Below are positions 4,278-38,180 of a stretch of 64,000 bases of DNA, piece by piece. The stretch is from assembly GCF_006345805.1 (NCBI RefSeq), contig NC_043020.1, positions 21,886,001-21,950,000 of the forward strand. The letters run 5' to 3'. Origin of the DNA: Octopus sinensis. Lineage: Eukaryota. Under the pieces are notes generated by a model. It was not told the DNA's origin. It saw only the letters and a list, made by a program, of their open reading frames with translations, and searched no databases. The stretch's first letter is position 1, and the number at the start of each line of letters is the position of its first letter. The position numbers and the translations under genes are program-made.

Positions 4278-4485
4278 TATATATATATATATATATATAT
4301 ATATATATTATATAAAAGGGCTTAGTAAAATAAATTACTTTGCCGCATACTGAACTCGTTAGAAATAGCAGCTAAAAAAACTATTTCTAACACTTAAAGA
4401 AAACCTCTCTCATATAGTGTTTGCTCAATTCAACTCAAGAAAGTATGAGGGTAGAGACATTAAAAAATCAAATGCAAAGGTTATT

Positions 4486-4538
4486 TGAGTACGTACGTTT
4501 CAAGATTAGCCAAAATCGACCCTTCTCTCATCAGCTCA
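4486..4538 (-). ncRNA. Type I hammerhead ribozyme, 552-nt family, copy 1
   Basis: Reverse complement reads TGAG-CTGATGA-GAGA..TCTT-GAAAC-GTAC-GTA-CTCA. Confidence 0.85.
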
Positions 4539-5036
4539 GAATGCCCTTGTTTGAATTTGAAAACACTGAAAATGGGAGCATACCCTTTCGGCTTGTTATC
4601 GCTTCTGAAGATCTGTTCCAAACTAACAGTGCCAACAAACTCAAATATGCAAGAGAAAAATTTCTGCTCTCCCCTTTCCACCAGCGTGGGTTAAAATCAG
4701 CAAACACTATGCTTTTTTCGGTAAAATCCGAGACAATTAAGTAGAGAGAGATGAATTATAATTTCAACAATTGAGGGTAAAATTAATTAATTAATTAATC
4801 AATTTCACCAAGTATTCAGTATGCAAAGGGACCATTTAAGGCAAATTCAAATTATTACATTATATAAAAGGGCTTAGTAAAATAAATTACTTTGCCGCAT
4901 ACTGAACTCGTTAGAAATAGCAGCTAAAAAAACTATTTCTAACACTTAAGAAAACCTCTCTCATATAGTGTTTGCTCAATTCAACTCAAGAAAGTATGAG
5001 GGTAGAGACATTAAAAAATCAAATGCAAAGGTTATT

Positions 5037-5089
5037 TGAGTACGTACGTTTCAAGATTAGCCAAAATCGACCCTTCTCTCATCAGCTCA
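5037..5089 (-). ncRNA. Type I hammerhead ribozyme, 552-nt family, copy 2
   Basis: Same motif as copy 1, offset 551. Confidence 0.85.
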
Positions 5090-5812
5090 GAATGCCCTTG
5101 TTTGAATTTGAAAACACTGAAAATGGGAGCATACCCTTTCGGCTTGTTATCGCTTCTGAAGATCTGTTCCAAACTAACAGTGCCAACAAACTCAAATATG
5201 CAAGAGAAAAATTTCTGCTCTCCCCTTTCCACCAGCGTGGGTTAAAATCAGCAAACACTATGCTTTTTTCGGTAAAATCCGAGACAATTAAGTAGAGAGA
5301 GATGAATTATAATTTCAACAATTTGCATTTGATTTTTTAATGTCTCTACCCTCATACTTTCTTGAGTTGAATTGAGCAAACACTATATGAGAGAGGTTTT
5401 CTTTAAGTGTTAGAAATAGTTTTTTTAGCTGCTATTTCTAACGAGTTCAGTATGCGGCAAAGTAATTTATTTTACTAAGCCCTTTTATATAATGTAATAA
5501 TTTTAATTTGCCTTAAATGGTCCCTTTGCATACTGAATACTTGGTGAAATTGATTAATTATTAATTAATTTTACCCTCAATTGTTGAAATTATAATTCAT
5601 CTCTCTCTACTTAATTGTCTCGGATTTTACCGAAAAAAGCATAGTGTTTGCTGATTTTAACCCACGCTGGTGGAAAGGGGAGAGCAGAAATTTTTCTCTT
5701 GCATATTTGAGTTTGTTGGCACTGTTAGTTTGGAACAGATCTTCAGAAGCGATAACAAGCCGAAAGGGTATGCTCCCATTTTCAGTGTTTTCAAATTCAA
5801 ACAAGGGCATTC

Positions 5813-5865
5813 TGAGCTGATGAGAGAAGGGTCGATTTTGGCTAATCTTGAAACGTACGTACTCA
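5813..5865 (+). ncRNA. Type I hammerhead ribozyme, 552-nt family, inverted arm
   Basis: TGAG CTGATGA(5817-23) GAGA..TCTT GAAA(5850-53) C GTAC GTA(5859-61) CTCA; stem I TGAG/CTCA, stem III palindrome ACGTACGT. Confidence 0.87.
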
Positions 5866-34297: not shown

Positions 34298-34377
34298 TTC
34301 TACACGTGTTTCGAAAGGCACAAATTACCAAAATCCGATTGAATAATGGGACCATATTGTGTCTTTCTCTTCAGGAA
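34298..34377 (-). ncRNA. Type I hammerhead ribozyme (left arm)
   Basis: Reverse complement of 36938-37017. Confidence 0.85.
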
Positions 34378-36937
34378 GAAAAAAGGAAATCCGTTGGAAA
34401 AACAAAAACAGAACAGAGGCGGAGCAAAAACAAATCGAACTAAGCTCCTAAGAGCCCATGGCGAAACTGTTTATCAGTGTATGTTGAGAACCGGTGGCTG
34501 AAGAATTCAACGGGTCAGGCATCGGTCAATCATGTGGGTGAGGGTGTATAGATGTTCTTTGTGACCGAGAATAAAGTTCTGACTATTTAAGGAATATTGG
34601 ATGTTTTATAAGGGGCGAGAAAAAATCTACTTAGAGACGTGTGTGTGTGTGTATACTGTTCTATATATGTGTGTGTTGGCGTAGGGGCAGAAAACATTTT
34701 TTGTGTACGTGTGTGCGTTTGATCGTTCGGCTGTCAGTGGCTACTGCCGTGATAACCGTTGGGTGGCAGAAAGAAAAAAAAATATATATATATTATGTTT
34801 TATGTGTGTGTGTGTTCATCTAAGCCTGCCTTGTCAAGGAAACCCCCCGCTGTGAAAAAACCAAGCCCCGTTTGTCTTACAGGAGTAATTCCCCTTGCAG
34901 TGGTTAATCGTAGATATCTTAAAGGCTATTTCAGAATTTGTTACCAAGGGCTATGGGTGCCGGTATTATTTATAAACGCTATTTAAAAGCCAGATAAGTG
35001 TAACGCCGCCAATGGGGGCATCGAAAAGCCGACTGTAAGAGCCCATTTACCATCCGGCCTCTGGCAAACAAAATATGGAAGAGTTCGGAGACACAAAGGT
35101 TGCACTGTCTTCTGCCCCTATCAAATGGGAGGGCCACCGACAAAATTGACCATTCCAGCCTATAGCTTAAGTTCGTATCCTTCAGTCGCCATATTAGCTT
35201 ACTGAGTCCCGTGGTCTGGCGCTTGTTCATGTCCCGAAAAGTTGCGTAATGGTTGGAGACACGCAAAGACAATCTTGAGGATGATGCCCCTACATAAGTG
35301 TCTTCACTTATGTAGGGGCATCATCCTCAAGATTGTCTTTGCGTGTCTCCAACCATTACGCAACTTTATACTGTTCTATATATGTGTGTGTTGGCGTAGG
35401 GGTAGAAAACATTTTTTGTGTACGTGTGTGCGTTTGATCGTTCGGCTGTCAGTGGCTACTGCCGTGATAACCGTTGGGTGGCAGAAAGAAAAAAAATATA
35501 TATATATTATGTTTTATGTGTGTGCGTGTTCATCTAAGCCTGCCTTGTCAAGGAAACCCCCCGCTGTGAAAAAACCAAGCCCCGTTTGTCTTACAGGAGT
35601 AATTCCCCTTGCAGTGGTTAATCGTAGATATCTTAAAGGCTATTTCAGAATTTGTTACCAAGGGCTATGGGTGCCGGTATTATTTATAAACGCTATTTAA
35701 AAGCCAGATAAGTGTAACGCCGCCAATGGGGGCATCGAAAAGCCGACTGTAAGAGCCCGTTTACCATCCGGCCTCTGGCAAACAAAATATGGAAGAGTTC
35801 GGAGACACAAAGGTTGCACTGTCTTCTGCCCCTATCAAATGGGAGGGCCACCGACAAAATTGACCATTCCAGCCTATAGCTTAAGTTCGTATCCTTCAGT
35901 CGCCATATTAGCTTACTGAGTCCCGTGGTCTGGCGCTTGTTCATGTCCCGAAAAGTTGCGTAATGGTTGGAGACACGCAAAGACAATCTTGAGGATGATG
36001 CCCCTACATAAGTGAAGACACTTATGTAGGGGCATCATCCTCAAGATTGTCTTTGCGTGTCTCCAACCATTACGCAACTTTTCGGGACATGAACAAGCGC
36101 CAGACCACGGGACTCAGTAAGCTAATATGGCGACTGAAGGATACGAACTTAAGCTATAGGCTGGAATGGTCAATTTTGTCGGTGGCCCTCCCATTTGATA
36201 GGGGCAGAAGACAGTGCAACCTTTGTGTCTCCGAACTCTTCCATATTTTGTTTGCCAGAGGCCGGATGGTAAACGGGCTCTTACAGTCGGCTTTTCGATG
36301 CCCCCATTGGCGGCGTTACACTTATCTGGCTTTTAAATAGCGTTTATAAATAATACCGGCACCCATAGCCCTTGGTAACAAATTCTGAAATAGCCTTTAA
36401 GATATCTACGATTAACCACTGCAAGGGGAATTACTCCTGTAAGACAAACGGGGCTTGGTTTTTTCACAGCGGGGGGTTTCCTTGACAAGCAGGCTTAGAT
36501 GAACACACACACACATAAAACATATATATATATTTTTTTTTTCTTTCTGCCACCCAACGGTTATCACGGCAGTAGCCACTGACAGCCGAACGATCAAACG
36601 CACACACGTACACAAAAAATGTTTTCTACCCCTACGCCAACACACACATATATAGAACAGTATACACACACACACACGTCTCTAAGTAGATTTTTCTCGC
36701 CCCTTATAAAACATCCAATATTCCTTAAATAGTCAGAACTTTATTCTCGGTCACAAAGAACATCTATACACCCTCACCCACATGATTGACCGATGCCTGA
36801 CCCGTTGAATTCTTCAGCCACCGGTTCTCAACATACACTGATAAACAGTTTCGCCATGGGCTCTTAGGAGCTTAGTTCGATTTGTTTTTGCTCCGCCTCT
36901 GTTCTGTTTTTGTTTTTCCAACGGATTTCCTTTTTTC

Positions 36938-37017
36938 TTCCTGAAGAGAAAGACACAATATGGTCCCATTATTCAATCGGATTTTGGTAATTTGTGCCTT
37001 TCGAAACACGTGTAGAA
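36938..37017 (+). ncRNA. Type I hammerhead ribozyme (right arm)
   Basis: TTC CTGAAGA GAAAG(ACACAA..TTGTGC)CTTTC GAAAC ACGT GTA GAA. Confidence 0.87.
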
Positions 37018-37116
37018 TGAAATAAAACGATTTCTGTTCAATCTGCGTTCAGCTCCATTTCTTCAATTCACCAATAATGTTTTATATATATATATATATA
37101 TATATATATATATATA

Positions 37117-38180
37117 ATTTAGAGATAAACCGCTATTTAGTTATTCAATCAATACTGAAACATATCTATAATACCCACATAGAAATTAATTAAAATATAT
37201 TATGATTATTAATCTAAAAATCCCAAAACAAATCAAACATTAAATCGACTACGCGCCTTTCATGACTATATGTATAAATCGATAATATTAATTCAATTTT
37301 AAAATGTATAGCCACTCTTCAGGTAAAAAATAATTTTAAATAAATGGAGATATTATAAGTAAACCATAAATATATAAATATATGTATCTAAACAGTAAAT
37401 AATCCAATAAAATTGAACAATATTAATGAAAAGCAAAAACATTACTTATCTTAGTGATGAAAACCAGTTAAATGAAATTTTAAACTTTACACTAACAATC
37501 TAGCGTTGTAAAAAATGAGTATAAAATAGTTGTAGGTTATGTAGTGTACGAACATAACTAGAATAAGATTAAAGCAATGGATTAATAAAATAATTTTAAG
37601 AATATATTTCAATTTATGAACATTTAGTTCATTTTATGTATTTTTATGTTTTTTTTACATATAATGTCGTAGTTTTAAATTATTGAGAATTTAGAATTAT
37701 TTCACCGTAAATGGTATATTACGTCACGTTTATTTTTATTTTTATTGTTAAATATGAGATAATTTTTTTTTACAACGCTAGACTGTTAGTTTAATGTTTA
37801 AAATTTCATTTAACAGGTTTTCATCACTAAAATAAGTTATGGTTTTGCTGTACATTAATATTGTTAAGTTTTATTGGATTATTTACTGTGAAGATACATA
37901 TATCTATATATTTATGGTTTAATTATAATATCTTCATTTATTTTATATTATTTTTTTACCTGAAGAGTGGCTATAAATTTTTTAATGGAATTAATATTAA
38001 CTTTTAATATTTTCGATTAATATATTTAGTCATGAAAAGTGCGTAGTCGATTTAATGTTTGTTTCTTTTGTGATTTTTGGATTAATAATTAAAATATATT
38101 TAATTAATTTCTATGGGGGTATTATAGATAATATGTTTCAGTATTGATTGAATAACTAAATAGCGGTTTGTCTCCAAATT
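37117..38180. mobile_element. Older diverged fold-back element with degenerate HHR in each arm
   Basis: 37117-37515 inverted versus 37765-38180 with many mismatches; CTGAAGA GTGGCTA..TAGTCAT GAAA at 37248-37324(-) and 37958-38047(+). Confidence 0.65.

Follow-up and report, generated by a model that had tools for sequence, protein, structure and literature searches.

We analysed 64,000 nucleotides of the Octopus sinensis genome (contig NC_043020.1, hereafter the window), in which a series of insertions carries hammerhead ribozymes (HHRs) and, in part, coding sequence for a GIY-YIG endonuclease. The region is very probably a graveyard of Penelope-like elements (PLEs). We can say with good confidence that el3, el4 and el6 of the seven insertions described here (el1 to el7) are 5'-truncated copies of autonomous PLEs of the Hydra clade, and that el1, el2 and probably el5 are short non-coding, HHR-bearing, retrozyme-like elements. 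An earlier interpretation of the same DNA, made without database searches (the sequence-only reading), had proposed a two-part system: non-autonomous HHR RNAs, together with a stand-alone GIY-YIG endonuclease that from the outset had no reverse transcriptase (RT), use an unrelated RT in trans and give obligatory head-to-head products. In the light of our results such a system is very improbable. The RT is missing from the window copies because of 5' truncation and not because they form a novel RT-less endonuclease system. Endonuclease without RT is a truncation product here, not a new division of labour among mobile elements. What such truncated copies retain is the endonuclease end of the ORF and a 3' region with a predicted dimer-type HHR. 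The coding insertions contain the following parts, including open reading frames (ORFs) and short interspersed elements (SINEs):

29335–33902, minus strand: el3, read as a 5'-truncated Hydra-clade PLE body (29335–33641, minus) joined to an inverted 3'-terminal fragment (33642–33902, plus)
29503–29773 and 33642–33912: inverted arms of el3 as delimited by repeat scan and self-BLAST
33645–32440, minus strand: chimeric ORF of el3, 401 aa, post-RT linker and GIY-YIG domain
29809–29699, minus strand: predicted complete HHR of el3
about 33642–33715, plus strand: half HHR of el3
29849–30173: SINE nested in el3
34083–37084: el4, a zig-zag of four segments with a common sense start position
34083–35300, minus strand: segment A of el4
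35305–35367, plus strand: segment a' of el4
35367–36014, minus strand: segment B of el4
36019–37084, plus strand: segment C of el4
34979–35299 (minus), 35693–36013 (minus) and 36020–36340 (plus): C-terminal GIY-YIG fragments of el4, 107 aa, starting from the YVG motif
34377–34298 (minus) and 36938–37017 (plus): predicted HHRs of el4
60666–63984, minus strand: el6, an el3-like plan outside the region first noted, with a body (60666–63662, minus) that contains an N-rich linker
63402–62975, minus strand: frameshifted GIY-YIG fragment of el6
63663–63984: inverted right arm of el6, with a tail of about 95 nt
about 60785–60700 (minus) and about 63762–63850 (plus): HHR-like motifs of el6, with one core substitution each and a CGAUCG helix III
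61335–61669: SINE nested in el6
flanks of el6: (CA)n(TA)n on the left, (TA)n on the right

The truncation of el3 can be observed directly. Its closest protein is found in O. sinensis itself (P0002, XP_029653623.1; 70–73% identity). This protein has RT motifs upstream, and its residues 228–339 match the start of the el3 frame. The genomic locus of P0002 (L002, O. sinensis CM016888.1) is 82.5% identical to el3 at the DNA level over 1431 nt. The match stops at position 33642 of the window, and upstream of it L002 continues into RT (P0141 residues 181–488, E = 3e-80). Position 33642 is also the start of the inverted arm of el3 and the point where the homology to P0002 ends. The inverted arm contributes the ATG of the 401-aa ORF (33645–33643), and this ORF is therefore a chimera formed at the junction. 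In addition, the linker of el3 is without its third cysteine and without the CPxxGxC stretch, both of which are present in the close relative P0001.

As had been noticed from the letters alone, two elements (el3 and el4) carry GIY-YIG-like coding sequence and none carries RT; tblastn of the window agrees with this, and in el6 the corresponding fragment is frameshifted. With full-length relatives as queries, only the C-terminal part of the protein is matched in the window, beginning at about residue 473 in el3 and at about residue 599 in el4. No RT-coding DNA was detected by tblastn anywhere in the 64 kb; a weak match at 51128–51382 was given by one query only, in a compositionally skewed stretch. 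In el4 the truncation lies before the linker. The frame begins at the YVG motif, and therefore the GIY strand is missing. All protein alignments of el4 start at a palindrome centre (36014–36023), and there is no ATG.

These observations bear directly on the idea of an RT-less helper. It is true that the window has no RT coding, that el3 has an uninterrupted frame of 401 codons ending in a complete GIY-YIG core, and that many database relatives are short proteins consisting of the endonuclease domain only. The short database proteins, however, are the expected output of gene callers applied to 5'-truncated copies. The el3 frame is homologous to the post-RT region of RT-bearing proteins, its DNA homologue in the same species runs into RT, its start codon is supplied by the inverted arm, and its linker is incomplete; el4 begins at a palindrome centre with neither start codon nor GIY strand. 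For el3, the model of an endonuclease-only helper with RT in trans is thus already largely refuted. The sequence-only reading had itself named ordinary RT-encoding PLEs that were simply 5'-truncated as the outcome that would speak against it, and this is what we find, directly for el3 and by inference for el4.

L002 is informative also with respect to the form of the insertions. This RT-bearing copy is a plain 5'-truncated insertion without an inverted partner, and head-to-head products are therefore not obligatory. Its HHR is located at 10027–10134 of the locus. In the family of el3 and L002 the distance from the stop codon to the HHR is approximately 2.1–2.6 kb. The contigs of full-length relatives have a total length of 2.4–3.3 kb. 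A diverged direct duplication of about 70 bp (5455–5530 and 10530–10590 of L002), resembling a target-site duplication (TSD), flanks the copy. Between the 3' end of the element and the duplicated flank there is a short (ATAC)(TA)n run; as this run is placed before the duplication, part of (TA)n may be generated at the 3' junction. The same locus contains another inverted pair (11345–12567, arms 94.8% identical), which is bounded by (TA)n and has no canonical CUGANGA core.

The identity of the protein family follows from its relatives. HMMER search with the el3 ORF against 1.84 billion representative proteins gave 2978 matches at E<=1e-3, and residues 270–400 of the ORF always align to the C-terminal end of the matched protein. 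Both the 401-aa ORF of el3 and the 107-aa fragments of el4 match only the C-terminal end of proteins of 700–800 aa that have RT motifs upstream. Among the matches of at least 600 aa, Y[RK]DD and DKT are present in all nine and RW[KR] in four of nine, with LRWR or LRWP visible in the alignment. Aligned long relatives show, in order, FDxxxYYPSI, MGSxDSAE and then YRDDG; the CxCx5C linker comes next, after it the GIY strand and the YIG strand, and at the end CxxC..E..N..CxH. The last signature is invariant or nearly so, as are the residues Y, G, R, H, E and N; it reads CSLC..E..N..CIH in el3 and CNLC..E..N..CPH in el4. The CxCx5C linker is found in 73 of 150 relatives. In el3 the linker keeps CNC, and the deletion removes the third Cys.

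According to its published diagnosis, the Hydra clade has DKT in place of DKG, a motif of the RWK type and CxCx5C in the linker, it lacks CCHH, and its conserved E and N are flanked by CxxC and CxH (PMC8557442). Judged from sequence motifs, these features appear to be present at the level of the family; the RT motifs come from the relatives, and the window copies are truncated. The family profile matches a retron RT in the PDB (E = 5e-4), and P0141 gave a weak match to TIGR01453, the NCBIfam model for group I intron endonucleases. An AlphaFold model of the el3 endonuclease domain (predicted local distance difference test, pLDDT, 83.8; predicted template modelling score, pTM, 0.77) has the catalytic domain of I-TevI as its top fold match in the PDB (probability 0.94, TM 0.63 on the target, E = 0.1). 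The el3 domain is thus predicted to have the GIY-YIG nuclease fold. Neither the 401-aa ORF of el3 nor the 97-aa ORFs of el4 gave a Pfam domain. A word-index protein search with the el3 endonuclease domain gave no match, and no exact match to the el3 ORF was present in public assemblies.

The remaining insertions (the non-coding el1, el2 and el5, and el7) and the TA tracts between the neighbouring elements are located as follows:

4307–6145: el1, non-coding head-to-head pair of greater-than-unit-length tandem copies, unit 551–553 nt
4307–5321, sense minus: left arm of el1, about 1.85 units
5322–6145, sense plus: right arm of el1, about 1.5 units
4486–4538 (minus), 5037–5089 (minus) and 5813–5865 (plus): predicted HHRs of el1
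27968–29289: el2, non-coding head-to-head pair, unit 492 nt
27968–28863, sense minus: left arm of el2, about 1.8 units
28864–29289, sense plus: right arm of el2, 0.9 unit
28581–28687 (minus) and 28954–29060 (plus): predicted HHRs of el2
about 28089–28195, minus strand: third HHR copy of el2, with a GAAGC core mutation
37117–38180: el5, old non-coding head-to-head pair with arms 37116–37515 and 37766–38180 and an unpaired centre of about 250 nt
37324–37248 (minus) and 37958–38047 (plus): degenerate HHRs of el5
8457–8780: el7, minimal head-to-head pair outside the region first noted, with 119-nt arms (8457–8575 and 8597–8715) and a 21-nt spacer
27891–27955, 29301–29334, 33903–33924, 34032–34081, 37083–37116 and 38214–38299: (TA)n tracts around and between el2, el3, el4 and el5

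For the HHRs we wrote a descriptor that asks for the core CUGANGA, GAAA and UH, for a helix III, and for at least 3 bp in each of helices I and II. It recovered 8 complete candidate HHRs in the window, all of them within el1–el4. Dinucleotide shuffles of the sequence gave 0.165 ± 0.43 motifs (maximum 2 in 200 shuffles). Copies within one element are not independent, and the result therefore corresponds to four independent HHR families. With a relaxed descriptor both arms of el5 gave a decayed HHR, in which helix I has 2 bp and helix III is mismatched. In el3 the right arm begins inside helix II, which leaves half of an HHR, and el7 has no HHR because its arms are too short to reach it.

Helices I and II vary in sequence among the families and their pairing is kept. 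Helix II carries inserts of 26–86 nt. In el1–el4 helix III is a stem of 1–2 bp with a palindromic loop (CGUACG, CGGUGCAUCG, CAGCUG and CACGUG). In el2, for example, helix I has 8 bp, helix III is CGGUGCAUCG, and the 5 bp of helix II close an insert of 68 nt. Palindromic helix III is the dimer-type architecture of metazoan and PLE hammerheads (PMC4209133), and by its sequence the core of el1–el4 matches the type I dimer-type HHR of PLEs and metazoans; self-cleavage is predicted. Rfam reported no hammerhead in the window, either at the gathering score or at E<=10, and gave only microsatellite-driven miRNA noise. The likely reason is the combination of 26–86-nt inserts in helix II with a helix III of 1–2 bp. 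Elsewhere in the window two near-identical 36-nt stretches (12215–12250 and 26253–26288) match CTGANGA..GAAA loosely, have no hammerhead helices, and mark a dispersed repeat unrelated to PLEs.

Inverted repeats were located by a repeat scan of positions 3500–39000 and refined by self-BLAST of each element. All five insertions in this region (el1–el5) are inverted pairs with an HHR or a partial HHR in each arm, as the sequence-only reading had described them. It had also called their sequences unrelated. At the DNA level this holds: self-BLAST found no similarity among el1–el5, and the one cross-match of el3, with el6, is the nested SINE. At the protein level it does not, since the translations of el3 and el4 align to one common endonuclease family. 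Identity between the arms is 99–100% in el1, 98–99.7% in el2, 97–98.5% in el3, 99–100% in el4, 87–88% in el5, 89% in el6 and 95% in el7.

The sense of the ribozyme is minus in every left arm and plus in every right arm, i.e. it points outward. Each arm is a 5'-truncated copy with the 3' end of the element facing the flank, which accounts for this polarity. Outer ends abut TA repeats: all 14 outer ends of the seven elements adjoin TA tracts, whose share of the window is 1.4%. At its right end el5 reaches (TA)n via (CT)n(TA)n, and el7 has (TA)n on both sides. Our tabulation of flanks and polarity in the window thus bears out two further points of the earlier description, namely outward HHR sense in all arms and outer ends at (TA)n or (CT)n(TA)n.

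Between the inner ends of the two arms the offset is 256–294 nt in el1 and 86 nt in el2; in el5 it is at most 250 nt, and in el3 and el6 it amounts to kilobases. Because these ends are unequal, the centre is not a true palindrome in any of the HHR-bearing pairs but el4. Perfect palindromes occur in el4 only, where 4-nt spacers are found in opposite orientation at two centres (35301–35304 and 36015–36018).

The outer ends differ as well. In six of the seven elements one arm is 65–170 nt longer than the other at its 3' end. This tail is on the left copy in el3 (170 nt, 29335–29504) and el4 (148 nt, 34083–34230) and on the right arm in el2 (about 106 nt) and el7 (65 nt). In el1 the end of the right arm lies about 100 nt further along the unit than that of the left arm. 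Both 3' ends of el5 are at the same base. The tails of el1, el2, el3, el4 and el6 fold better than shuffled sequences (z from −1.6 to −3.1). The L002 copy has the same 3' end as the longer arm of el3 (..cattttataac), and this end is therefore a defined terminus of the family.

Such inverted structures could in principle be chimeric joins made by the assembler or derived from long reads that were not split. The 99–100% identical arms of el1 and el4 and the perfect palindromes of el4 with their 4-nt spacers would fit this explanation, and PLE structures of this kind have been reported to cause assembly problems (PMC8557442). On the other hand, the arms have diverged in el2 (98%), el3 (97%), el7 (95%), el6 (89%) and el5 (87%), inner ends are asymmetric, and outer ends differ by the tail. 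There are seven independent cases, every one of them between (TA)n tracts, and a like architecture is known from many genomes. An assembly artefact is therefore quite improbable as a general explanation.

The same asymmetry speaks against DNA transposons. Long inverted arms, internal tandem sub-repeats and TA flanks recall Foldback or Stowaway-type elements, and one may consider Foldback or terminal-inverted-repeat (TIR) transposons, similar to miniature inverted-repeat transposable elements (MITEs) with a TA target-site duplication, that have captured PLE fragments. However, the termini are not equivalent, given the 65–170-nt extension of one arm in six of seven elements. The arms consist of retroelement coding and 3' sequence with variable inner truncation points, a plain 5'-truncated member of the family exists (L002), and no transposase is present. 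We regard this alternative as hardly credible.

The four elements el2, el3, el4 and el5 belong to four unrelated families and lie in one or two neighbouring microsatellite loci. Their packing into one or two TA loci argues for targeting. Between el3 and el4, at 33926–34031, approximately 80 nt of unique sequence separate (TTA)n from (TA)n; this may be the original locus or the remnant of another insertion.

The architecture can be accommodated in the following scheme. A ribonucleoprotein (RNP) of RT and endonuclease would cut (TA)n on both strands. The 3'-OH on each side of the break would then prime cDNA synthesis at either of two start sites that lie within the RNA, close to its 3' end. Both cDNAs would stop early and be joined head to head in the middle. 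Dual priming of this geometry would account for the outward 3' ends, the unequal inner ends and the one-sided tails, and the use of two RT start sites would explain why only one arm has a tail of 100–170 nt. That cDNA might be primed from both ends of a break had been part of the sequence-only reading, and this part is plausible: a PLE protein cleaves and extends both strands in vitro (PMC11167929).

In el4 the joint may have been formed in another way. Its four segments begin at the same sense position and have 4-nt spacers, which points to snap-back of the cDNA at a fixed 5' end of the RNA and not to random truncation; snap-back would give perfect palindromes with 4-nt loops. It can be asked whether all inverted pairs arose from the same PLEs by this type of joining, i.e. 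from one cDNA, target-primed, which then folds back to serve as its own primer. Besides the shared start and 4-nt loops of el4, the T/A-rich sites at which the short arms end are in line with this, as they would allow microhomology joining to (TA)n. Yet the centres of el1, el2, el3, el5 and el6 are not palindromic, and with inner ends differing by 86 nt to about 4 kb very large hairpin loops would be needed. Extension of both strands, in contrast, has been shown in vitro for a PLE. Self-priming as the general route seems rather unlikely, and priming from both strands, with snap-back in el4, remains our preferred scheme.

The experimental support comes from the Poseidon PLE of Anolis carolinensis. 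In vitro, the Poseidon protein cuts AT-rich targets, and both strands are cleaved as well as extended (Frangieh et al. 2024, PMC11167929). It uses two internal RT start sites whose spacing corresponds to the genomic tail, and HHR cleavage is not needed for insertion (PMC11167929). Differences must be kept in mind: Poseidon belongs to another PLE clade, its tail is 30–40 bp long, its RT start lies inside the start of the ORF, and the elements described here are known from their sequence. No N-terminal coding remnant was revealed in the 3' tails when the first 200 aa of full-length relatives served as queries in a permissive tblastn, and therefore a Poseidon-like overlap of ORF start and repeat could not be shown.

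The non-coding elements el1 and el2 consist of head-to-tail units with one HHR per unit and fewer than two units per arm. The units of 492 nt and 551–553 nt have no protein-family match, which supports the earlier suggestion that they are non-autonomous; these elements, and probably el5 too, would depend on PLE machinery. A 107-aa frame in el1 was treated as spurious, being antisense to the HHR, starting with TTG and having no family match. Metazoan non-LTR retrozymes, i.e. tandem non-coding HHR units, have been described as non-autonomous PLE derivatives (Cervera & de la Pena 2020, PMC7229834; Li et al. 2026 bioRxiv 10.64898/2026.07.22.740005). Like them, el1 and el2 are non-coding, AT-rich and arranged head to tail, have one type I HHR per unit with a 1–2-bp helix III and palindromic loop, and are plausibly mobilised by PLEs. 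Unlike them, they have units of 551–553 and 492 nt, as compared to approximately 170–400 nt in published retrozymes, and form inverted pairs in (TA)n with 1.85 + 1.5 (el1) and 1.8 + 0.9 (el2) units per arm, not long direct arrays. Their HHRs have a long helix II and lack the canonical loop-loop architecture.

As the arms of el1 and el2 are longer than one unit, multimeric or circular templates are implied. It is possible, and we put it forward tentatively, that el1, el2 and perhaps el5 form a retrozyme-like RNA lineage of octopus that depends in trans on the Hydra-clade PLE protein for its mobilisation; this protein would recognise the structured 3' tail and not the sequence. Inverted dimers of greater than unit length would then arise from symmetric cleavage of the palindromic (TA)n by a dimeric RNP, which would use both DNA ends to copy an RNA that is multimeric or circular. 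If this is true, the seven sets of junctions are a natural record of the mechanism of PLE integration.

Kinship to PLEs, which the sequence-only reading had recognised, is borne out by the motifs of the long relatives, the HHRs and the association with (TA)n. PLE insertions are known to be highly 5'-truncated and frequently arranged as partial tandems, and an inverted copy, itself 5'-truncated, 'often' adjoins their 5' end (Craig, Yushenova, Rodriguez & Arkhipova 2021, PMC8557442). In the same survey the PLE tail of 30–40 bp is often present at one end only, HHRs are readily detected in the Hydra clade (universal), nearly all of its families are in (TA)n, and Mollusca are among its phyla (PMC8557442). 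The elements of the window resemble this clade in having RT and C-terminal GIY-YIG in a single ORF (seen in L002 and the long relatives), in the linker, CxxC and CxH motifs, in the absence of CCHH, and in HHR and (TA)n. They resemble it also in 5' truncation, partial tandems, the inverted partner and the tail at one end. They differ in that all window copies are without RT, through truncation, and in the 26–86-nt inserts of helix II, which recall the 'HHR_half_core' cases of PMC8557442. Each component of the proposed system is thus an already described property of PLEs, and the differences (length of tails, inserts in helix II, the 3' untranslated region (UTR) of el3, retrozyme-like units as inverted pairs) are of degree only.

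Several points weigh against our interpretation. The Hydra-clade assignment is based on published motif diagnostics and not on a tree including reference sequences. Pfam gave neither RVT_1 nor GIY-YIG in the window ORFs and ten long homologues, and Rfam recognised none of the HHRs. An RT-bearing relative at the DNA level was not recovered for the families of el4 or el6. With a 3' UTR of 2.1–2.6 kb, a full copy of the el3 family would apparently be about 5 kb long, as compared to the 'generally <3 kb' given for Hydra, and the tails measure 65–170 nt here versus the published 30–40 bp. In L002 the (TA)n sits between the 3' end of the element and the TSD-like duplication of about 70 bp, and part of (TA)n could arise during insertion. 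Finally, the 99–100% identical arms of el1 and el4, the two youngest elements, may, on the DNA letters alone, look the same as assembly artefacts would; divergence of the arms in the other five elements argues that the architecture is biological.

The region offers seven junction-resolved PLE insertions within 64 kb, four of them in one or two neighbouring (TA)n loci. This set of junctions bears on several questions of PLE integration: priming on both strands versus snap-back, two RT starts and the one-sided tail, and multimeric templates. Moreover, Rfam and the usual descriptors miss HHRs whose helix II has long inserts, and therefore PLE-type ribozymes and Hydra-clade elements are probably under-annotated in cephalopods.

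The window also contains repeats of other types. Besides the two tRNA-like SINE copies nested in el3 (29849–30173) and el6 (61335–61669), which share 91% identity and differ in their orientation with respect to the host element, one being opposite to the other, further copies are found at 6353–6498, 6933–7078 and 19543–19688. A fragment of a mariner / Mos1-type transposase is located at 10060–10362 (Pfam HTH_48, E = 4e-7).

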